Shown one piece after another: positions 1,451 to 54,178 of a stretch of DNA of 64,000 nt; within the stretch, counting starts at the first letter, position 1; each line of letters opens with the position of its first letter. The notes under the pieces were generated by a model. That model was not told the origin of the DNA and made no database searches. It saw only the letters and a list, made by a program, of their open reading frames with translations. Made by a program: the position numbers and the translations under genes. This DNA comes from Podarcis pityusensis (Eukaryota), in the NCBI GenBank assembly GCA_964106645.2, contig OZ067044.1. One strand, 5' to 3'.

Positions 1451-3289
1451 CTGTAGCATGGAGAGTTGTGGATCGGCGTGTGCATCTTGAGCAACACGGG
1501 GAGTGGTGTGTGTTTGTGTGTGTGAGTGGGAAGGCTGCAAGGGAAGTTGCTGAGATTTCTTGTGTGCGCATCTTTTGGCCAAATAGTAAAAAATTCAGGT
1601 TGCCTGATCCACAGGGGGAAAGGGTAGCCTCCGAAAGGGGGAGTGTATGCGTGCTGCTTGTGTGTTTTGCGGTGGTGGTGGTGGTGTGTTATTCACCCAA
1701 GGCAGGTTTCTTTTGAAAGATTTTGAGGAGGAAAGGATCCAAATCCAGTGTAAATACACTGAATCACCCTCTCATCTTCACACTCTCCCCACAGTGAGAT
1801 GGGCACAGCGGCAAAATAATCTTAACTCATTTCCAGATCATGTGTATATAGTAAAATTAATCCAGAATTTTGTGCGTTGTTCCTCCCAGCCCATGTTTCT
1901 CTTTTTCTAACTTTTAAATATATTGCTGGTTTTGCATTTATTTGTTCTAGATTAGTATATTGGCCAGTTCTAACATACAAAGCTAGGGATTTTGTGAACT
2001 TGGCAGATCTGTATTACTTGAAATACTTTTTTTTTTTTTTAACTGAAACTACTTTATTCCAGTAGTATAGGCTATAATACCAATACTGGGCTCTTGTACT
2101 GCTGATCTGCAGTTGAGTTTCTGGCAATATATGTAGTACCATAATAAAGATATTGGAAGGGAGTTTAAGCTGAAAGCAGAAAGTTTGCCAGTGGAGATTT
2201 CAGAGTTCATTGTTCATGATGTACATCCGTACTGCAAGCTTTCCACTCCCCCTCCCCACCCCCACATCTGGAAGTAGTTAGCTTTGATTCTTCCCTCCCC
2301 ACACTCCTTTCTTAAATGACACCCTCTGTGTATGTTAAATGATAGAATTTATAACTTGTCCGCCATTTAAAGGATCAAGGCCAGCAACCTCTTATTTAAT
2401 TTGTTCATCCTTTCAACTTTTCTTCATTTGTGCTTTACTGAATGTTGAGGCGAGAATTATGTCTCCTCTCCTTACTGAGTCTATAGCTGAACTGGGAAGT
2501 GAACCCAGGTGCCTGAGGTCAATTCTGTTCAGTGTATCATAGTTGCTTTCATTCCAGCTGCAGGGCCTGATATCACAAGCCTTGGCTTCCCTTTTGCTGA
2601 CAGTCTCATATGAAGCTAAGTTACAACACTGCTCTTCATTGTGTATAATTGCACTTCTGTGTTATCAATTTGCTGGTTCAGGGTTCTGTGATACAAGCAA
2701 TGATCTGTGATGCTGTAGTTCTTTATAACTGAGTAGCATTGTGTTTGTGTAGCAGCATCCATCCCACTGTGTAGTCAAGGCAGCTTTGCAGCATTTTGAA
2801 TCACTAAAATGCATCATTTTTTGTGTGAAAACCAAAGCAGTTATTTAAATGCTTTAAACGTAGTTATTTAAATGCTTTAAACGGAACATCAGTTAATGTT
2901 CAGAGAGGAGATTTGTTCCTCTCCCCAAAAAGTAAAAATGTATTCACTTGCCTTGAAAAGTTCTAAAGGTCTTTATTACTGAGTAGAAGGAGGAATTATG
3001 GCATACATGTGGCATTTTCTTAATGCTGTGATTTGACTAACAACTGCACCTGCTGAAATTCTCTTCACAACTATTACATGTTCAAGAGCCCCTGTTGTTG
3101 ATTGCATCTGGTCACTGTAGTCCTGTTTCCAGGGGTGATGTAATCATATCCTGTTTTTCAAGTAAATGGCATGGTATTAAGAGTGTGTTCTTATGTAAAC
3201 GATTTCTAGTTTTTGAGGACGAATCAGAAGAGACATCAAAAGCAACAATTCAGTTTGTAGATTCAACAAGCCTCTTGGTGACAAAGGAT

Positions 3290-3380
3290 GAATCGTAGAA
3301 TCATAGAATCATAGAGTTGGAAGAGACCACAAGGGCCATCGAGTCCAACCCCCTGCCAAGCAGGAAACACCATCAGAGCA
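3290..3380 (-). mobile_element. CR1 LINE extreme 3' end
   Basis: Reverse complement of the 3' UTR and (TTCTATGA)n tail seen at ~54095-54178 and ~61755-61842. Confidence 0.9.
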
Positions 3381-3958
3381 GAATCTTTTAATTTGGTTTT
3401 GATACTAATATGTGTAAACATTCAAGGAAGTTGGAAATTTCCATAAATATTGTTTCCTCCACTATTGCAAGAATCTCAGAGCATCAGTGTGGGTCTTTCA
3501 GAATGGCAGAAATATTTGGTATGCTGCTGCCTACAGATCGGAGATAATAGGATGTTGCAAATCCTCTCACATCTCTTAAGAACTGTGTATATGCCTTTCA
3601 TCAAATATAGCAAACAATTTGTAAATTGAGTAATGGCACAGGAAAGTTGCTGATAACTGCCTTCAGAAGTGTGATGTAGTAAGATAGTTACTTCAAGAAT
3701 CAGCAGTGTTGATTAAAAAAAAAGATGCTTAAAAGGGAGCTGTTAGAACTGAACATTTGCTGTATGCTTGCCATTGTTCAGTATTCATGTAGCTCTGTTA
3801 CTAACTTTCTTTAAAAATATAACTAGAAGAGAGAAACTCAGGTTTGCTTTTGAAATTGTTTGAGATTTTTGAATGTATTATTAATATTACCATCATATAC
3901 ATATGAGAGGTAATGAAAATTGGTGTAGGGTATTGGTGAAGAGACATGAACTTACATT

Positions 3959-4430
3959 CAGGTAGGTAGCCGTGTTGGTCTGATGCAGTCAAAATATATA
4001 TAAAAAATAAAAAAATAGTCCAGTAGCACCTTAGAGACCAACTAAGTTTGTTCTTGGTATAAGCTTTTGTGCGTATGAACACTTCTTCAGATGCACTACC
4101 TTCAGATACCTTCAGCTATTTGAAGAAGTGTGCATGCACATGAAAGCTTATACAGTGGTACCTCGGGTTAAGTACTTAATTCATTCCGGAGGTCCGTTCT
4201 TAGCCTGAAGCACCACTTTAGCTAATGGGGCCTCCTGCTGCCGCCACGCCGCCCAAGCCCGATTTCTGTTCTCATCCTGAAGCAAAGTTCTTAACCTGAA
4301 GCACTATTTCTGGGTTAGCAGAGTGTGTAACCTGAAGCGTATGTAACCTGAAGCGTATGTAACCCGAGGTACCACTGTACCAAGAACAAACTTAGTTGGT
4401 CTCTAAGGTGCTACTGGACAATTTTTTTAT
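3959..4430. mobile_element. Penelope-like inverted-repeat element, interrupted by a MITE
   Basis: Long inverted arms (GTCCAGTAGCACCTTAGAGACCAACTAAGTTTGTTCTTGGTA and its reverse complement). Flanked by a 13-bp direct repeat ATGAACTTACATT (3946-3958, 4431-4443). Family assignment from recalled squamate Penelope termini. Confidence 0.7.
4153..4377 (-). mobile_element. Tc1/mariner (Tigger-like) MITE
   Basis: TIRs CAGTGGTACCTCGGGTTA...TAACCCGAGGTACCACTG with TA target duplication. Opposite orientation to the copies at 11527 and 40065. Confidence 0.9.
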
Positions 4431-5025
4431 ATGAACTTACATTGTACTTTGGAAGGCAACATTTGAGTAGGGTTATCCTATGGTTTATTGAACATGGGAT
4501 CTCTTGCCCAACCATGGTTTCCTGTTGTGTGAACGAGCTATGCTGAGCCAGGGTCTCATGCTCCTCTTCTTCCATGAGCAAATGGAAAAGATGAGAGGTT
4601 TTCAATTTTAAGCAAGCTGTAGTTCCCTGTTAAGGCTGATATCTGGCAATAGTGGTTTGTTTAAACTCTAGTGAGAACCAAACCAGGATCAAACAAAGCT
4701 TTCTGTTCCTGGCTTGTTAAATAATTTAATAAGCTGCAGGACAGAGGTTGGATGCACTGTGGATTGCACTGAGATTGTTTAAAATTGGATAACTGAAGTT
4801 TCCTATTTTTACCTCCTGGTGTACAAAAGTGTGTGTGTTGGGGAAGCCTGAGGCTAACCACAACTTACTCATGTGGCTCCTGTTATGCCTGAACCATGCA
4901 ATTGGGTTCAAATATCCACCGGATGCTCTTGTTCTTTCATTATTGTCTAAGCACATCAAAACATCAAAGGATGCACTTCAGTGTAAGCATGTGTATAGTG
5001 ATGCACATTGGGGCACGCACACACA

Positions 5026-12025: not shown

Positions 12026-12554
12026 TAATGATGTTTAAGTTAGAAGCAAATTCTTACTGAACATTGAAAAGGAGTAGGAGGAAGGTATTTCTCTGGAAAT
12101 ACCTCAGAGGTGGCATTTACACAGTGTTAGAAACTGAGATATAAGAGCTAGGAGCCAAATGGCACCTTCAAATTAGGTTTCAGTTGCCACAATATGTCTA
12201 GAAACATTTTTTTTTACATGATTACACAGCAAATGAAGACAAGATAGGCCATTTAGCTGAAGATGGAATAAATACTGTGCACGAAAGACAAGTTCTTTTA
12301 AAAAGAAGCAATCAAGTGGAAAAAGCAGTCTAGAAGAGATGTGACTCCAGTTTCATTCTAGCAGAAGTTAAAAACTGAACCTCTTTTACTCAGAGTGGGT
12401 AGTTTGCCAAAACCTGCATCTCTAAAAAAATTGTGAATAACTTTGCTTAGAGAATTTATTTGGTTCTATTCACAGTTTTTTTTTTTGTATTTGGAGGGTT
12501 GTAACCAGCCATAGCAAAACAGGTTGTACAGAGAGCACAGTTGGACTTAAGTTT

Positions 12555-17554: not shown

Positions 17555-18407
17555 TTGTTGTTGTTGTTTAGTCGTTTAGTCATGTCCGACTCTTCGTGAC
17601 CCCATGGACCAAAGCACGCCAGGCACTCCTGTCTTCCACTGCCTCCCGCAGTTTGGTCAAACTTCGAGAACACTGTCCAACCATCTTGCCCTCTGTCGTC
17701 GCCTTCTCCTTGTGCCCTCCATCTTTCCCAACATCAGGGTCTTTTCCAGGGAGTCGTCTCTTCTCACGAGGTGGCCAAAGTATTGGAGTTTCAGCTTCAG
17801 GATCTGTCCTTCCAGTGAGCACTCAGGGCTGATTTCCTTCCTCGATCTTCTTGCAGTCCATGGGACTCTCAAGAGTCTCCTCCAGCACCATAATTCAAAA
17901 GCATCAATTCTAATGCTGTCTAGGTTTATCATTGCTTTTCTCCGAAGAAGCAGGCGTCTTTTAATTTCGTGGCTGCTGTCACCATCTGTAGTGATCATGG
18001 AACCCAAGAAAGTAAAATCTCTCACTGCCTCCATTTCTTCCCCTTCTTTTTGCCAGGAGGTGATGGGACCAGTGGCCATGATCTTAGTTTTTTTTATGTT
18101 GAACTTCAGACCATATTTTGCACTGTCCTCTTTCACCCTCATTAAGAGGTTCTTTAATTCTTCCTCACTTTCTGCCATCAAGGTTGTATCATCTGCATAT
18201 CTGAGGTTGTTGATATTTCTTCGGCAATCTTAATTCCGGCTAGGGATTCATCCAGTCTAGCCTTTCGCGTGATGAATTCTGCATATAAGTTAAATAAGCA
18301 GGGAGACAATATACAGCCTTGTCGTACTCCTTTCCCAATTTTGAACCAATCAGTTATTCCATATCAAGTTCTAACTGTAGCTTCTTGTCCCACATAGAGA
18401 TTTCTCA
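17555..18407 (-). mobile_element. Bov-B (RTE clade) LINE, 5'-truncated, with internal deletions
   Basis: Minus-strand translation gives LFNLYAEF...NINNLRYADDTTLMAESEEELKNLLMRVKE...RIDAFELWCWRRLLRVPWTARRS (RT YADD motif). Bov-B-type 3' UTR and (CAA)n tail. Confidence 0.95.
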
Positions 18408-21882: not shown

Positions 21883-23377
21883 AAGTCAGACCTTATGGCT
21901 AATGTACAGAAAAAAAGTGACTATCGCTTCAGAATGTAGGTGAGGAAACATTACCTGCAAATGCTTCTCAACACTACCTATGGAAAGCTAATGTGTCCAG
22001 AAGAATGGCACTAATCCAACAGCCCCCCCCCCCCCGGCATTGTGTTTCTTTGTGCAGAAGATCATGTGTTGATGAGCATTCAGATATGATTCGCCATCTG
22101 CGTTCTGAAGTGGTATAGTACCAGAGAACTGCACCATGGGATCCCCCCCCCCCCGAATGTGATCAGTAGAGCTAAGAGCTAAATATGCTGTTCAGTGATT
22201 ATGAGAGAACCATGTATTTGTTCCAGGACAGATTTTGGAAGAAGTTCCTGGTGATGGAAGTAAGCTTGAAAGATGGCTTACAGTGCATGGGGAACTTGTT
22301 GCAGGTGAAATATACACACTGTACAAATCGTATTTATTGTTTCTTGAAAAGCCACTTCCTCAAATTTAGGTGACAAGCTTCTTGTAACAAAGCCACATAC
22401 TGTAGTAATGGGAAGAAGATGCAACATAGTTGCTAACCACTCAAGCGTAACACTGATTCTGAAATCCTTAACTAGAGCATTGGGCATGTTATAATTTGGT
22501 TTGGGGTGCAATATTCAGGACCCTGTAATTTTTTTACCCTCAGTTCTGTCCCTTATGGTTGCTAACTTAATCCAGAAAGATTGCAGACATGCCTAGTGAA
22601 CTCTCAGAAAAAAGAATGAGTAGGATTTCTAGTGGTCAGGCATGGAACTTCAGTGTTTCAGTGTAGCTATTTGTGTTTCCCATGAATAAATTATGGTAAT
22701 ACATTGATTTTGTTTTAATTGCATAATTAATACAGAGAGGGGAATTTAATTTTTCTTGCTGTGGATTTTTTGTTACTTTTGAGTAACAAATTTACTCAGC
22801 CTTCTCCTTAACTGTATATTTCCTTTTAAACAAGGCTAATGCTTAAACAAGAGAAAACTGATCTCTCATCTACCCATTTGAACCAGATGAATCTTGGTGA
22901 TTTCAGGGTGAGGTCTTGTTTACATAATAAACATCAGTTAAATGAAGTCTGAGACACAAAACATGCCTTTTTGGTTGTTGCTTCTCTCTGTTGAGGTCTG
23001 TAGTCCTGACCTTGCAGGAGTTCTGAAAACATTGCAAAAATCCTTTATTTTTTATAAAGGCTAGATTTAATTGACTTAAAAAAACAAGGATGAACATGGT
23101 TGAATATATTTGTGGATGTGGTAAATTTTAATGGAAATTTGTGTAACTATTGGTTAGTTGCTGTGCTGATGTTTCTGTAAGCGTGTCTTCTGTAAGCCAC
23201 TCAGAATTTACTAACTATTGGAGGGGATAGAAATTGCAAAATGAACACAGTCGTAGAACCATACAGTCCCAGTTCAGGTTTTGCCAAACTTATATTTTAC
23301 TGCATTTGTTATGTAACTTAAAATTTGTGGTGTTGGGGGTGGAGGGAAAAGGGGAACATGTCTCTTATGCTCAAGTC

Positions 23378-24160
23378 CATGGGTTGGCAGACTAAGGCCT
23401 GCAGGCCGAATCAGGCCCACCAGGGTCGTAAATCTGGCCAGTGGACCCTGCCACCTGCTCGGTCAGTCCCCACACACTGAGCTAAACCAGCATGGTGTTT
23501 CCTTGAAAAGAAGCCGTGGACGCCTCTCTGTGCGGGGACTGACTTCCGCGATGCTGACACGGCTTCAGATTGGCTGCAGGAAGCTCCTGCAGCCAATCCA
23601 AAGCTGCAGACACCTCTGGGCAGGCAGCAACGCTGGCGAAGCTTTGGATAGGCTGCAGGAAGTTCCTGCAGCCAATCTGAAACCTCGCTGCCCGTGCGCT
23701 GAGGCGTCTGCTGGCGGGCAGGTGGTGGGTCTGGGCCGTGCCGTGGGCATCGTGATGGGCGCATCACAGGGCTTCAGCCGGAGCTTGGTGCACCTGCTGG
23801 CCCTGCACCCGGCTCGGTGCTGCTGCTGGTGGCACACTTGGCTGCCACGCTGGAGCAGCTGGATGGCGAGCTGCGCGCCCCTCCTGCCCGCTGACCTGGC
23901 CTTGAACGACGGGCCGCAGCGCGTGATCCATGCCGCCTGGGAGCTCCGCAGGGACAGGCCGAAGGAGTGGCCGCTGCTTGTCAACAATGCTGGTGAGCAG
24001 GCGGAGCTGAGACGTGCTCCTGAGTGCGTGCAAAGTGTGTTCCTCCTCCAGGTCCGGAAGCAGGTGCAGGACCGACTTGCAGGGCGACTTCCTGCAGGGG
24101 CCGCTCTGCTTCCTTAGAAAGGCCTGATCCCCCGGGAAAGGCCTAAGGCAGGGCTTTAGG
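23378..24160 (+). mobile_element. Non-autonomous hAT (Charlie-like) element carrying a captured gene fragment; right end not found
   Basis: CATGGGTTGGCAGACTAAGGCC matches the reverse-complemented terminus of the intact hAT MITE at 38775-39021 (CAGGGGTAGGCAACCTAAGGCC) at 18/22 positions. Followed by GGCC-rich subterminal sequence and internal palindromes. Confidence 0.65.
23698..23992 (+). pseudogene. SPR: Sepiapterin reductase exon-1 fragment (non-processed, frameshifted)
   Basis: Joining frames gives GLGRAVGIVMGASQGFSRSLVHLLA / PGSVLLLVAHLAATLEQLDGELRA / PADLALNDGPQRVIHAAWELRRDRPKEWPLLVNNAG. This aligns with vertebrate SPR [46 protein letters not shown]. Ends at G|GTGAGC, the phase-1 exon-1 donor position. 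Start ATG not seen and exons 2-3 absent. Confidence 0.88.
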
Positions 24161-26370
24161 AGGAAATAACACTAGGGACATAAGCCACACATTAATAAAT
24201 CTTTCTCCCAAGATCTGACAAAAGCTGCATCCTACAGATCTCTCTCCCTCCCCCCCCTTTCCTACCCACTTCTCCCTTTAATAGCTAAAACTTTGCAACT
24301 GATATTTATAGTTCTTTTTGCCCCAGTGCATCAGTTTGAAGCTGCCAGGTACTTGGAGGTTAATTTCACTGTGTGCTTTTGTAAATTTATTTGGAAAGAT
24401 AAAGTGTAATCAGTGGATGGTGGGATTTTTTTGAGTGGTGGTGGTGGGATTTCTTTTCTTTCTTCTGGGAAAGAGATTTCTTTAAACCAGGAGAAAGCCA
24501 GGCGCCAGATCTCCTCCCCTTCCCACACTTCCAAAATTTTAATTTTGATGGGTTCATTCTATTCCCCCCCCCTACTTTGCTTGAGACCATGCAGAGCCCC
24601 AATCAGTCGGCAGGCATTAGTGGTTTGGAAGGGTCCTTAGACTGACTTGATTATACAGCAGGTTTGTAAGGGAAGATGAAGAACAAGAAGAAAGTGGGCA
24701 GGAGTTGCAGTAGAAAACCAAACTGAACAAATTATGCTGTTGGGTCTGGTTCAGCTTTAACCTTGAAACAAGGTATGATTTTTTTGGGAGTAGACTTCTG
24801 GATTAGGTGGTGCTCTCTCTGCTCTTCCCTGTTTATGCTGTATTCCTCCATTTAGCACTGTATGTGACCACCTCTAACCTGGATTATAAAGAGGTTTGGT
24901 ACATGCCTAAATTTCATGTTGGATTTGAAATCGGGTTGTCAAAGAGTGCTAACAGACTTCATCATGGTTTGAATTTGTGGAAGGGATGGCTGTGTTTGCA
25001 CATTACTATAAGCCACAGTTTACTGGCTTGTCATCCTTTTTCTGCTCAATCATTGTTTCTTTGCTACTGCTCTGGTGCAAGCAGGACAAACAATCCAAGA
25101 AGCCTGAGCTGGTAATTGTGGTGTCTTTGTCCCTAGCAGCTTTAGGTTGGTTTTCAAGTTGTGGTTTGTTATGGAAGCCTCGATCCCTAACTTGGATGTA
25201 ACAGAAAACCAAGGATTCATTTGCTCTGATTGCGTGATTTTTGGAAAATGAGAAACATGGAAGACTTCAGTCAAGTAAAAAACGATTCATGGAATGGATG
25301 GGTTTTTGTTGACAGCTCAGAATTTAGGCAAATGTAGGAAGGTGTATGAACTTTACACTGTTCTCATTTGATGTTTTTCCCCAGCAGATTTTTGACTGTT
25401 TCGATTAAGGTTGAAGGTACACACTGAACTGAGTTTACAAGAGCATAAGGCATTTGCTCTTGTAACCATATACCCTTGGTACTGGAGACAGAAGAAGGGG
25501 TAGAGCTCCAAACTTCTCAGGATTCAGCTTTATGTCGTCCCCCCCCCCCCCCATTCTGTCAACAGATAAATCCTCTTTGGTATGGGCAATACTAGATTTC
25601 CTAAGAATAAGCAGTTTTATAATGAGAGGCTAAAATGTTTCTCAAGTAATTGTTCAGACTTTTTCTGGTTTCACTCTTTCCCCTCTTATCATTAAAGGTG
25701 CACAGTTGTTTTTCAAGGAAGGGTGTGTTTTGGTTTTTGCCTACTGTGAAATTTGAGAGCTCTTGAGTGTTTAGAGGTTTGACAGTAGAGGCACAAGAGC
25801 GGTAGACATAGCTGCAAGCAACCTTGCAGCAAGGGAATCAGACATAACTTTCCACTGGAGGATTTCAAACACCACAAGAGCAAATGCAGGTTCTTGGATT
25901 TTTAAATTGTGCAAGTAATGGTATGTACTTCGTGTATTGTTTGGATGAATTTGGTGGTTGGTTGGTTAATGGGTATACAGACAATTCTGGTAACTGCAGA
26001 AGGTAGAGAACTTTCGGCTGTGTACTGATAATAGCATGTTTTGCTTGCTTCTCAAATATGCAATAACTTTGTCTCAACATTCCCCTATGGTAACAACTGT
26101 TCTCTAGAGACTTGGTGCTGGCAGTATAAAGAGTATCCATATTATTTTCTCTTTTTCTTTGTCCATAATAGTGACTCAAGTTTGGATTTTGTAGCAATTC
26201 AGGCTGAAATTCTCCAAAAGCTGAAACCGCCTTCAAAAGCACAACCAAATCTGCTGAGGGGTTTGTGTGTGTGTGTTCCTCTGGTATGTTTCTTTCTTGC
26301 CTGTTTCAGTGTCTGGCATAGTGTTTAAAGTTCCTTTTCTCTCTCTGAGATGGGATGAACCCTGGTACTT

Positions 26371-26585
26371 ACCGTATTTTTCCATGTATAACACACCCTT
26401 GTGTATAAGATGACCCCTATTTTTTGGGACTCAAAATTAAGGAAATGGGGGGAGATTGCCCACAGTTCTTAACCTCCTTTGAGGAGGATTGCCCAATTGT
26501 TGAGCTTTTTTTTGGGGGGGGGGGAATTACCCAGAGTTGTTCAGATTGCCGACAATAGCTTATCCGCTAGCGGCTTATAGATACC
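26371..26585 (+). mobile_element. Tc1/mariner-type DNA transposon left-end fragment
   Basis: TA|CCGTATTTTTCCATGTATAACACACC...TATAAGATGACCCC resembles Tc2/mariner MITE termini. No right TIR seen. Confidence 0.5.
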
Positions 26586-36470: not shown

Positions 36471-38774
36471 CTGAGTTGCTTTGGGTTCATTAATGGAGGG
36501 GGTGAATTGCGACGAAAATGTGAATAGGAGGTGGGGGCAGTCCTACTTGATATACCACTTGGTATTTGCTACAGTGGCTTGGAGGGTGTGGTTTTTGTTT
36601 TTGTTTTTGTTTTGAGCAAGTAGTATGTAAATTTTGTAAAATAATAAAAAGAGAAACCAAAATAAAACCATCCATATTTGAATTGGCTTTGAAGCCGGAG
36701 GAGTTTTGTGTATGTGCTGTTAGTCGAACTGTCAGATTGAAAAATGTTACAGGATCATTAAGACTCTGAATTGCGAGGGTTGACTAATAAGTGGAAGAAT
36801 AAAGTATTTAAGAGAGTGTACCAAATGCTGGCCTGGCCTGAGAGATGGCTTTTATCTGGTGGGCAGAATATTTAGAAAGTGTTCTTTTGAAGCAGATTAC
36901 CCACCTGACTCGGTGTACTCTTACGATTAATTTAGTGCTGGTGAATGGAGCTAGAGAGGCTACTTGGGAGTCAGTTCTTCTATGGTCCATTGAGTGTGAA
37001 GGAATGACTGCTGGGTGTGGAGCACACTTCTGCTCACAGACAGCCTTAGCTGTCTGACCGCGTGACCTTCGGGTGTGGAATATACTTCCACCCGCAGACA
37101 AACCACAGCTGTCTGAACATCATGCCCTCTATTTAACCTTTGGCTTTCTCAGTGGTCTGCCATGCCCTGTCTGTGACCTTTGTCTCCTTCGTCATACATT
37201 GTGCAAGGGGAAAGTGACGCGGTGGAAACAGGTGCCAAAATAACTTTGTACCACCCCTCGATCTCGGGATTGGAAGATGTGTAAAGGTCACAGTCAAAAA
37301 TGTATCTGACTGGTTTTGCATATTGTGCTAATAAAAAGAGCCTTAGCAGAGCTGTCTGGCAGCTTGCTTGTGCACAGTTCACCTGCATTACCAACTCCTG
37401 CCTCATGCCTTCACTTCAGAGTGGGCCTGTCTGCTTCAGTTTTTGTCATTAGCTTATAACATCCTGCTAAGAAGTGAAAACAGAGCTGACTTTTCTATCC
37501 AAGAGTTTGCCAAGAGTGTTTCCAATTGTCAGATCACTGTAGCCACTTCATGTCTCAGGTTTTTCCACTCAGACCTAGGTACTTCTATAAGAGGGATGTG
37601 ATGGTAGGACTGCCCAGGAGCAAATAACATGCAATGTACCTCTCAGTCTGTTCTTTCTCAAAGAAAGGTAGGGATGTATTCTAGTTTGTCACAAGAGTGT
37701 CATTTCCCAGCACCACTCCACAACTGGAAGCCTGAGCGAAGGGTTAGGCACAGCTGATGGCTCGTCCAAAACATAATAAACTCTAATTATAAATATTAAT
37801 GTAATTTCCATAAAGAATGAAAGAAATCTAAAGTTACACTGGGGGGAGGGGACAGATTCTCTAAGTAGTTCATAACACTTGTTATATCCTGACAATATTT
37901 TCAGTAACTTGCAGGTTAAAGAGAAGCATCTTTCTTCAGTTGGCATACGGAGAACATGTGCTGTCCCAGCAACACATAAAACACATTAAGGAGAGTGGCA
38001 AAACTATTGGGAAAACCTACTCTTTGTCTCTGGAGATTCAGGAGAGGGTTTGGGTGACAACAATAATGCCATCAGATAGGATTTTGACCGGGCCAGGTTT
38101 TGCATGGGCCACAATGGCAAACACAATTTTACCTCCTGTAAATGACATTGAGAAGTGAGTGTACAGTTGAGATCTTCTGTTCCCACTTGTCAGATTTCCC
38201 ACATGGATTTGGTAAAGTGCAGCTTACATGCTTACTGGCTTTTGAGATTATGTAGACAGGAATCTGGGCAGAAAGAGTGCATTATGAAGAGAACCAGTGT
38301 TGGATTACTGTTACAACTGAGACCATACATGATTCAGTATTGAACATGATAGAAACAGCTCTGTATAGATAGCTAGAAACAACTGTAGTTCATTGAGGCC
38401 ACCACTTGTTTTCTGGCAGCACATTCTGAATGTTAGCAGGTCTTGAAAAGAAAATAGTATGAGTCCTTTTCTGATTGGATGGTATAAACCTTAAATAAAC
38501 TTAAACTGACGTATTCCACTGTTTTACTTGGCTGATTAAAGGGACCTCCCAATACTGTTTTGTAGCTTGTCAACCACAGTTAGTGTTTCTCATATGCAAG
38601 ACAGAGTTGAGGTCTATCTATTAGGCAAATTATTGCTAGTTTAAAGAGTTGTGCAATGCAGAGTCTTGCTCCATAAGTCAAAAGACATTCAGAGCCACTT
38701 AGTCTTAAAAATTATTCTAAAAATACAAAACACAGTAATTTGGTCTAGATATAAGGCTGAACCATGGTTTAGAG

Positions 38775-39021
38775 CAGGGGTCGGCAAGGTGTACCTTGCC
38801 TGGGCCGGTTCACTCCAGCGGAGATCCCTCCGTGGGCTGGATTGCATGATTTCCGGCGTCTGCGCAGACGTGATTTTCGGTGCCTCGGAAGCGAGTCCCT
38901 GTGTCGCGCTGCGCGCGGGGACTCACTGAGCAAGCGGCTCGGTTTGGGGGTGGCTCGGGGGCTGGTTAAACGACCCCCGTGGGCTGCTTATGGTCCATGG
39001 GCCTTAGGTTGCCTACCCCTG
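38775..39021. mobile_element. Intact hAT (Charlie-like) MITE
   Basis: TIRs CAGGGGTCGGCAA / TTGCCTACCCCTG with a perfect 8-bp TSD GTTTAGAG (38767-38774, 39022-39029), resembling the NTCTAGAN target preference. Confidence 0.95.
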
Positions 39022-40064
39022 GTTTAGAGTGACATGCCTGAGCAGCAGTAAACTTTGAGTTTATACACTATCCCTCTCCTTTTCTTCTCTAGTACATCCA
39101 CAAAGTTTGGAAACATTTCCTGGTTTGAACAAACTAGAGTTAAGCATTACACTCAAACAGGGAACTCTGGTCAGTTAAACCACAGTTTGATCTGGGCTTG
39201 TTTCAATTAAGTATTGTTTTACTAACTACAGGGTAAATTATGGATGGTTAAGAACAGGAATCTGCAGCTGCACTGGAAGAGGAGAGAGCAGAGGGCAATG
39301 CACAATCAGAAGTCTAGTTAACTTAATAGTAAACTATGCTTTTAGCATTGTGTCTGAACTTGGGACAATTAGCACCTTGATCTTTTCCAACAAAACATAT
39401 TCTATCAGTCTAATCAAGTTATATATCATGAACAGCTCCAGAATTCAGACCTGATTAAGTATAGCTTGGGTACCACCACAAAACTCCTTTTCACAAGTTA
39501 ACACCCTCTTTTTATTTGACTTGCTTTGTTTTGATGCAGGAGTGTGCACATTTTAGCACTGTACATATTTTCCCTTTAAATATTTTTATGCTGACCACAG
39601 AGCACAGCACAACTAACATATGGTTATCCATTGCTGTTTGGGAGACTGTCTTTATTTTATTTTTGTTACATAAATAGAAAACAGTTTTAAATGTCAAAAA
39701 GAGGACAACAAGAAAAAATGATAAAAAATACAATACAAGGGGAAAATATACAATACAGTGGAGCTACAAATACTTTGCATCACATACCTTATGGGAGAAA
39801 GCACCTCAAAGCTAAAATTGTAAAATGTCATGCAAATATGAGATATACCAAGAATCATGGGTGATTTCTGTCTTGAACGGTTTCCAAAAATTGTGCTGTG
39901 AGAGTGGAGGGTAAAATTTGGAAGACTTCTTGAATGAATGAAAATGTGTACAAATCCTTTAACATGCCCAGTTCACCCTATTAAATGAGTGCAGGAGTGG
40001 TTATTGGCTATGGCTGTTACACAGGAACATAAGAATCTGCCTTATAAAACTGGTCAGTGTAGTA

Positions 40065-52451: not shown

Positions 52452-53709
52452 CCCTAAGGTGTTTAGAACCATAAACATGTTTCTTAATACAATACAAAAT
52501 TCTTATAGTCACTCAAGATACAACCTCAAAACAAATATTAACAAATGATTAAAAGCTTGGTGAAATAATAATGTATTATTCAACTTGAACCTATCTCACA
52601 TAAATTTTGTGAGGATAGAGTGCAAGAGTACCCTGTGCGCCACCTTGGATTCCCCTGGGGGAAAGTAATAAGTATGAGTTTTCTGAGCAGGCATTACTAT
52701 TACGTCACAAGCTTTTGTTTTTTATTTTAAATCAGTTGAATGATTGTTGCTTACCATAAAATACAATAACTGGTGGAACGTGGTAATGATGCTTAACATA
52801 TAGTGTGTGTCGAATGGATAGAGCATGTCACAAATAATTTTGGTAATCCTTACAACTGTTCTGTAACATAGCTTAATATTATCCCCATCTTGCAGTGGGA
52901 GTGAGGTACTGAGGCTTGGAGAATAGTCGCTTGTCTAAGGGCCACCTAGGGAGGGTTGGGGAACATGGAGGGTAACTGGATGGAGTGAAGGAAGGAGAAG
53001 CAGCAAGAATGGAATCCATATGAATAACTTCATGTGGTGCTCTGGATTAGGAAAATTGATCAATGCTTCTCTGAAGTCTGCTCATAAAGGAAAAAGAAAT
53101 GATTGCAGCCTCAGAGGAGTAGATCTGCTATATTTATCTTTCATGCAAGTTATTTAAGGAAGCATGTGGTGTCTTAGTTCAGTTTTTTTTCTTCACCTTT
53201 TCTATAAACCAAAAAGTGAGACACTTTGACTTCATTTGATTAAGGAGAAACTTATTCTGTAAGTTTTTGTATTGCTATCAGTGACAGTATAGCTGGTGCC
53301 AAAGTCTAGATAAAACCCTTACCTTAAAAGAAATGTCTGAGCCCCTTTTTCTTGACCCCAGTCCAGCACCCTTTCCAGCCACTTCCTTCATTCTTAATGA
53401 ATTGTACATGTCATGCTGTGGTGGGTCATGGTCAATATTTGTTTAAATGGTTTTTATTTACTTTTTAATATTTATAGGTCTTATTTTGTGTTTCGTTTGT
53501 GTATTCCTTATTTATTGTAAGCTGCCGAGAGAACTTCATTACAAATGATATACATACATAAATAAATGAATGCTGTAAATTGATGATTTTATATTTCAAT
53601 GAACCACATATATAGTGGGGAGAGCCTTGTAATTAAATTCTTTTTAAGGTGCAAGAAGCATTCTTTTTACCAGTTTCATTTTTTTAGTATGTGGATTCCA
53701 TCTGCTTTT

Positions 53710-54178
53710 CAGGACACTGACAAACTGGAATGTGTCCAGAGGAGGGCAACCAAAATGGTCAAAGGCCTGGAAACGATGCCTTATGAGGAACGGCTAAGGG
53801 AGCTGGGCATGTTTAGCCTGGAGAAGATGAGGTTAAGGGGTGATATGATAGCCATGTTCAAATATATAAAAGGATGTCACATAGAGGAGGGAGAAAGGTT
53901 GTTTTCTGCTGCTCCAGAGAAGCGGACACGGAGCAATGGATCCAAACTACAAGAAAGAAGATTCCACCTAAACATTAGGAAGAACTTCCTGACAGTAAGA
54001 GCTGTTCGACAGTGGAATTTGCTGCCAAGGAGTGTGGTGGAGTCTCCTTCTTTGGAGGTCTTTAAGCAGAGGCTTGACAACCATATGTCAGGAGTGCTCT
54101 GATGGTGTTTCCTGCTTGGCAGGGGGTTGGACTCAATGGCCCTTGTGGTCTCTTCCAATTCTATGATTCTATGATTCT
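53710..54178 (+). mobile_element. Young CR1 LINE, 5'-truncated (ORF2 C-terminus plus 3' UTR)
   Basis: Uninterrupted DKLECVQRRATKMVKGLE...RLRGDMIAMFKYIKG...FLTVRAVRQWNLLPRSVVESPSLEVFKQRLD, followed by a (TTCTATGA)n tail. Confidence 0.97.

Follow-up and report, generated by a model that had tools for sequence, protein, structure and literature searches.

A decayed fragment of the sepiapterin reductase gene (SPR) lies inside a non-autonomous hAT transposon in a 64,000-nucleotide stretch of Podarcis pityusensis DNA (contig OZ067044.1 of assembly GCA_964106645.2; "the window" denotes this whole stretch). The segment from 23378 to ~24155 is, at a probability we place near 0.9, an old and immobile member of a lacertid Pack-hAT family with an SPR-derived interior. 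An initial annotation had proposed that a non-autonomous hAT family captured the 5′ region of SPR and spread it; four bounded copies with distinct duplications, together with 12–52 contigs per genome, bear this out. The same annotation correctly treated the window copy as a family member, with the correction that this copy is truncated and long dead.

The SPR-derived sequence belongs to a GC-rich island (23378–24160) that stands out, in base composition along the window, from AT-rich flanks with a GC fraction of 0.37–0.45. Translation of the island in frames 3, 2, and 3 of the plus strand yields every peptide motif that the initial annotation had read across two frameshifts. With native SPR as the reference (alignment A2), the first frameshift is a 7-bp deletion between 23806 and 23807 and the second a 23-bp deletion at ~23882/23883. 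A 30-aa piece (23719–23808) matched only sepiapterin reductase chains in PDB (best E = 0.0026), and an in-frame relative from the same family (P0001) matched SPR at E = 4e-14. Relative to native lacertid SPR the ATG region is deleted; the exon-derived part stops at 23992, with GTGAGC directly 3′.

The native P. lilfordi gene (L002, chromosome OX395134) has its first exon at 4001–4325. This exon comprises 108 codons plus one base, followed by GTGAGC, so that intron 1 is in phase 1, as had been anticipated. The point at which exon homology was seen to end, G|GTGAGC, is exactly the native exon 1 donor, and the GC-rich, intron-like DNA beyond it is SPR intron 1: window 23710–24074 matches L002 4013–4397 at 76% identity and 24097–24147 matches 4397–4445 at 80% (E = 4e-5), with homology reaching ~160 bp into the intron. 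Over the compared stretch the window copy holds 28 CpGs, and copies in general 26–31, against 71 in the native gene.

Intron sequence is kept across the donor and no poly(A) tail is present, in line with the earlier view that the copy moved as DNA. A processed or semiprocessed SPR pseudogene inserted by long interspersed nuclear element (LINE) machinery could explain a 5′ limit near the ATG, possibly near the transcript start, but it would not leave the donor and 90–160 bp of intron 1 in place, lack both a poly(A) tail and exons 2 and 3, and produce complete copies that end in hAT terminal repeats with 8-bp duplications. We give such a retrocopy an almost negligible probability.

Complete copies were reached through annotated proteins. 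A 204-aa open reading frame (ORF) over this part of the window had one protein match, a 117-aa "uncharacterized protein" of Podarcis muralis, which consists of an in-frame relative of this SPR exon 1 followed by read-through. An exhaustive search with the P. muralis protein returned many short proteins, eight of them lacertid by their records: P. lilfordi contributed five, spread over five chromosomes, P. muralis two, and Zootoca one. We fetched the DNA of four of these loci, L001, L003, and L004 from P. lilfordi (chromosomes OX395140, OX395128, and OX395135) and L005 from Zootoca vivipara (OY735917.1). All four begin at the base equal to window 23378 and share the terminus, the junction between backbone and SPR, and the SPR piece with the window, which disposes of the possibility that only a single copy exists. 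Each runs, in order, through a left terminus, a stem-loop, zero to two CCAAT-palindrome units, a short linker, the SPR part (exon 1, donor, and intron start), and a right arm of ~90 bp with the terminal repeat at its end. These components fully make up the 770–815 bp of each copy, and no transposase gene is present inside (alignment A2); the complete copy in L001 occupies 2613–3427.

Each complete copy carries its own target-site duplication: AGCTGGAG twice in L001, GTCTGGGG twice in L003, and TTTTAGCC twice in L005 (8/8 in each case), and GTGTGGAC/ATGTGGAC in L004 (7/8). Duplications of 8 bp are thus found in the family and at an intact miniature inverted-repeat transposable element (MITE) elsewhere in the window, but not at the window SPR copy. 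The terminal repeats conform to YARNG: left ends read CAGGGG, the canonical form, in the other copies and CATGGG in the window, and right ends, reverse-complemented, read CTGGGG or CAGGGG followed by TCAGCAAAC. The complete copies lie on different chromosomes with individual 8-bp duplications; therefore, the composite transposed after a single capture, probably by means of a hAT transposase. The four complete copies, each on a chromosome of its own and drawn from two genera, show this transposition after capture, and the parental gene, native SPR, sits elsewhere without transposon arms. The family has every property that we examined of a non-autonomous hAT element and of a Pack-TIR.

A plain DNA or segmental duplication of the SPR 5′ end, abutting an unrelated truncated MITE by chance, would suit the window copy itself, which has neither a right terminal repeat nor a target-site duplication. 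It is very improbable given that four other loci show this same arrangement enclosed by terminal repeats, each with an 8-bp duplication of its own. The copies share no flanking sequence with one another or with the SPR locus, and upstream of the native ATG (L002) there is no match to the hAT arm or to the palindrome units, so the concern that the native locus might itself carry the hAT end falls away. Copies and native SPR are 76–83% identical from ~8–13 bp upstream of the ATG to +397; homology to L002 is confined to ~3990–4445, stopping on both sides of the gene fragment, and the outer sequences have no match.

The left arm ties the element to the hAT backbone. Its terminus at 23378 agrees at 18 of 22 bases with the reverse-complemented MITE end at 39021, as the initial annotation had counted, and from base 1 of either terminus the local alignment extends through a shared subterminal stem-loop (arms at 23462–23481 and 23524–23543 in the window copy), scoring 31 against 18.5 ± 2.4 for shuffles. 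The 247-bp MITE, described earlier as intact, is indeed so and is flanked on each side by the 8-bp duplication GTTTAGAG; at its left end it resembles the L001 right arm. Judged by its sequence, with both ends resembling those of the SPR-carrying family, this MITE is related to the backbone but holds no captured DNA. Its divergence, which puts it below the blastn threshold, is too great for the direct parent.

The units between the left arm and the SPR piece have a different history. Their number varies, with none in L003, one in L004, and two in L001 and the window, and each contains a 45-nt palindrome with two inverted CCAAT boxes ~20 bp apart. We aligned contigs of four species (A, B, C, and E) on window 22600–25000 at 80% likeness; summed contig depth over the palindrome region, which is not a copy number, is ~500 to 14000 times that of the flanks in all four. 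Most genomic copies of the palindrome are flanked differently, and the consensus of their loose ends is palindromic and contains AAAACGTTCGGAAA. The palindrome belongs to a far more abundant repeat, and the SPR-carrying element is therefore a mosaic that includes a piece of it.

Counts of distinct contigs, in place of summed depths, provided the basis for copy number. In each of the four species, 12–30 distinct variant contigs cover positions 23928, 23972, and 24075, and 40–52 cover 24033; the flanks of the window copy are single copy in this comparison. Contigs from A, B, and E span the left junction of the window copy, so this insertion predates the split of A, B, and E. Kimura two-parameter distances between copies are 0.21–0.29, the tree is star-like, and the differences are mostly CpG transitions, with heavy CpG loss. 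A protein tree places the lacertid Pack copies in a single clade (100/98) nested within that of lacertid SPR (100/97). Copies from Podarcis and from Zootoca are intermixed there, so the burst predates the split of the two genera; as a rough estimate, its age would be tens of millions of years.

The 3′ part of the window copy departs from that of its complete relatives. In the four complete copies the SPR part stops at the equivalent of window 24084 and gives way to the hAT right arm; the window instead carries on along native intron 1, ~50–70 bp further than they do, in what we call the long form. This extension is covered by ~3 other contigs per genome, with native-like bases. An insertion ending CTTGCAGGG, missing from the native intron, is common to the window and the short copies, which therefore stem from one capture event. 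The window copy probably retains a longer, older form of the captured piece.

No right end of the window copy emerged, in keeping with the earlier remark that none was visible. An inverted-repeat search and local alignment with the MITE ends gave nothing above noise, nor did the 100-bp right arm of L001 aligned over 24000–26500, and a second copy of the flanking 8-mer CTCAAGTC was not found in 23901–25500 at up to one mismatch. A candidate right boundary at 24577–24590 matches this 8-mer at 5/8 with no terminal repeat before it, and we attribute it to chance. Between the SPR-derived part and the single-copy flank lies a stretch (24156–24545) at ~3–6 times flank depth. With right arm, terminal repeat, and second 8-mer not found, we take the window copy to be truncated or rearranged at its 3′ side. 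It is an inert relic: the ATG is gone, the frame is broken by two deletions, the CpGs have decayed, and the right arm is missing.

In organism E, contig depth falls near zero at 24625–24786, and a 4.4-kb contig joins 24063 to 24780 through ~20 other bases. This organism seems to have a deletion of ~716 bp (24064–24779) that removes the element end and adjacent flank.

Several points weigh against reading 23378–~24155 as a transposed Pack-hAT member. The window copy has no right terminal repeat or second flank 8-mer, and its own transposition is therefore unprovable from this locus alone. The stretch at 24156–24545 matched neither the hAT right arm nor any fetched locus. No empty orthologous site was seen among the contigs of the four species, and the copy number derives from contig counts and not from a whole-genome census. 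The autonomous hAT partner and the exact empty parent were not identified, and no whole-genome lizard search was made.

SPR exon 1 has been captured by other elements as well. In Rhineura floridana (L007:2400–3395, CM057606.1), SPR exon 1 with ~700 bp of intron 1 sits in a different element, with 15-nt terminal repeats CAGTGGCGTACCAAG and a perfect 8-bp duplication, TATAAAAC, at either end; from −14 onward its identity to native Rhineura SPR (L009) is 85%. RefSeq labels this copy "sepiapterin reductase-like," and a second Rhineura copy is fused into a "proto-oncogene Mas-like" model. In Phrynocephalus forsythii, two copies (L006:2268–4538 and L008:2767–3796) belong to a third hAT-like family with termini CAGTGTTTTTCAACC and perfect 8-bp duplications GCCTAGGT and CATTAAGG. 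Its cargo is SPR exon 1 with ~370 bp of intron 1, and its nine annotated ORFs on at least seven scaffolds all group with native Phrynocephalus SPR (100/99). The L006 copy also contains a tandemly amplified 121-bp unit derived from the intron.

In a tree of exon 1 peptides, with all rows taken from records that name the species, copies group with the native SPR of their own lineage (lacertids 100/97, Rhineura 92/81, Phrynocephalus 100/99), and we therefore count three separate captures. Mapped on the native loci, the 5′ limits are −8 to −13 in lacertids, −14 to −17 in Rhineura, and −8 to −10 in Phrynocephalus, the last blurred by a microsatellite and able to reach ~−30. The 3′ limits lie at +397 or ~+460 in lacertids, ~+1030 in Rhineura, and ~+730 in Phrynocephalus. 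All three captures were found through ORFs containing the exon.

In the lacertid family a piece of SPR, from ~10 bp upstream of the start codon through exon 1 and the donor into intron 1, was captured once by the hAT backbone; the other two lineages likewise each made one capture. Following published models, the capture itself may have come about through template switching, either while a break within a MITE was being repaired or at a replication fork, these being the pair of routes put forward for Pack-TIRs of animals (PMC8277862). Cut-and-paste transposition then spread the composite, making an 8-bp duplication at each insertion, with a hAT transposase probably supplied in trans.

Capture might instead have been anchored on transcription, with a nascent unspliced SPR transcript or an R-loop at its 5′ end as the template and the later hAT spread unchanged. 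A piece that starts at or near the transcription start and ends variably in intron 1 would fit this model, and the 5′ limits of the three independent captures all fall just upstream of the ATG while their 3′ limits differ widely. A 15-nt TATA-like motif, TGCGTAAAAGCGCAC, is conserved upstream of native SPR in Podarcis and Rhineura (L002:3940–3960 and L009:2450–2465), ~30 bp upstream of the capture limits in both. Native exon 1 is 81–86% GC, with a mildly positive GC skew in its first 200 bp. However, this skew is weak, and Podarcis has two TATA-like motifs, the second at ~−118. The Phrynocephalus limit may reach ~−30, and the three events are few in number and share an ascertainment through exon-containing ORFs. 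We consider transcription-anchored capture doubtful.

By the same measure, we put forward only tentatively, and as an unlikely reading, that SPR exon 1 is a recurrent capture target of three unrelated hAT-like families, anchored at the transcription start, or else an advantageous mobile-first-exon cassette. Were the former true, a nascent transcript or R-loop at a very GC-rich, promoter-proximal exon would be used in capture; were the latter true, transposons would gain from a "start codon plus splice donor" cassette beside CCAAT-box palindromes, in effect a mobile first exon.

Annotated gene models involve several of these elements, and copies appear in annotation as "hypothetical protein," "sepiapterin reductase-like," "eL27-like," or "Mas-like." The Zootoca RefSeq model XP_034995904 ("eL27-like") starts in a complete SPR-carrying element (L005:2155–2924, OY735917.1), uses the donor captured from SPR, in phase 1, and terminates in an RPL27 retrocopy ~45 kb downstream. 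As a predicted model it may be either a real chimeric transcript or an annotation artifact. A further model (P0002) seems to join two transposon copies 41 kb apart. The Zootoca, P. lilfordi, and Rhineura models are all computational, and we did not count them as expression or as evidence of exon shuffling; the initial suggestion of an exon-shuffling vehicle, for which such models are the evidence, is not one we adopt.

Plant Pack-MULEs and Pack-TYPE elements (e.g., in rice) are likewise cut-and-paste elements that amplify host gene fragments between terminal repeats. Pack-MULEs favor GC-rich 5′ gene ends, a preference to which the 81–86% GC of the SPR exon captured here may be likened. They are Mutator elements of plants, with 9–11-bp duplications and thousands of cargos, whereas the present elements are hAT, with 8-bp duplications and one cargo examined. 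Within the window, the MITE shares the termini, subterminal stem-loop, and 8-bp duplication of the SPR-carrying family but has no cargo and no CCAAT-palindrome units. The Helitrons of vespertilionid bats (PMC4224331) are also amniote DNA transposons that amplify host exon and promoter fragments; they are rolling-circle elements without terminal inverted repeats or target-site duplications, both of which the lacertid elements have.

A close animal counterpart is hAT-N8_XT of Xenopus tropicalis (PMC8277862), a non-autonomous hAT whose cargo, 291 bp from the 5′ untranslated region of CAPSL, is a captured 5′ piece of a gene, with copies on different chromosomes, distinct duplications, and the parental gene elsewhere. 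It has three copies, whereas the lacertid family has dozens per genome, in an amniote. Unlike it, the lacertid cargo is a whole coding first exon with splice donor and intron start, and the same SPR exon was captured separately in three lineages. Across 100 animal genomes Tan et al. (2021) reported 370 Pack-TIRs, of which 208 were hAT (PMC8277862), and Pack-type hAT elements are accordingly less sparsely described than the initial annotation held for amniotes. Multicopy cases numbered 4 of 370 (three frog and one alligator), and lizards are unmentioned in the main text of that study. Pack-hAT elements are thus already known in animals; what is notable here is the copy number in an amniote and the recurrent capture. 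Our full-text literature searches found no paper linking SPR to transposon capture.

Table 1. Features of the SPR-carrying element and its MITE relative in the window
Feature	Coordinates	Strand	Basis
Left-flank 8-mer CTCAAGTC, would-be copy of the target-site duplication	23370..23377	.	Sequence
Left arm of the non-autonomous hAT backbone	23378..23560	+	Same start base as left ends of complete copies
Two tandem ~79-bp units, each with a CCAAT-box palindrome (23561–23605, 23640–23684)	23548..23684	+	
Decayed SPR exon 1	23710..23992	+	Translations, PDB match, alignments to native gene
Captured SPR splice donor GTGAGC and start of intron 1, common to all complete members	23993..24084	+	
Further SPR intron 1 (long form), window only among compared copies	24085..24155	+	L002 match
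Low-copy stretch, not hAT right arm	24156..24545	.	Contig depth
Intact MITE	38775..39021	-	Duplications GTTTAGAG at 38767–38774 and 39022–39029

Elsewhere in the window no further SPR-carrying copies were found, and a terminal-repeat-like match at 12401–12416 was set aside, with no MITE behind it. An Rfam scan of 23200–24700 gave subthreshold hairpin-type matches on the palindromes, far below gathering scores, which we ascribe to chance. The window ORFs identified no host gene around the SPR copy. Two long ORFs (17657–18181 on the minus strand and 53599–54102 on the plus strand) have the look of what we take to be C-terminal regions of LINE reverse transcriptases. The window opens with 1 kb of 65% GC, which may be a CpG island.

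The way in which cut-and-paste elements come by pieces of host genes is a matter of continuing debate, and multicopy cases in animals are very rare. Three independent captures of one exon allow the capture limits to be compared like replicates. SPR is also the orange-morph locus of wall lizards, where its upstream region underlies color (Andrade et al. 2019, PMC6431182); the main text of that study has no words starting transpos-, paralog-, or duplicat-, and such copies seem not to be treated there. For read mapping and annotation at this color-morph locus, the dozens of scattered sequences resembling SPR exon 1 and its donor are of consequence, and they could in principle supply first exons or small RNAs.
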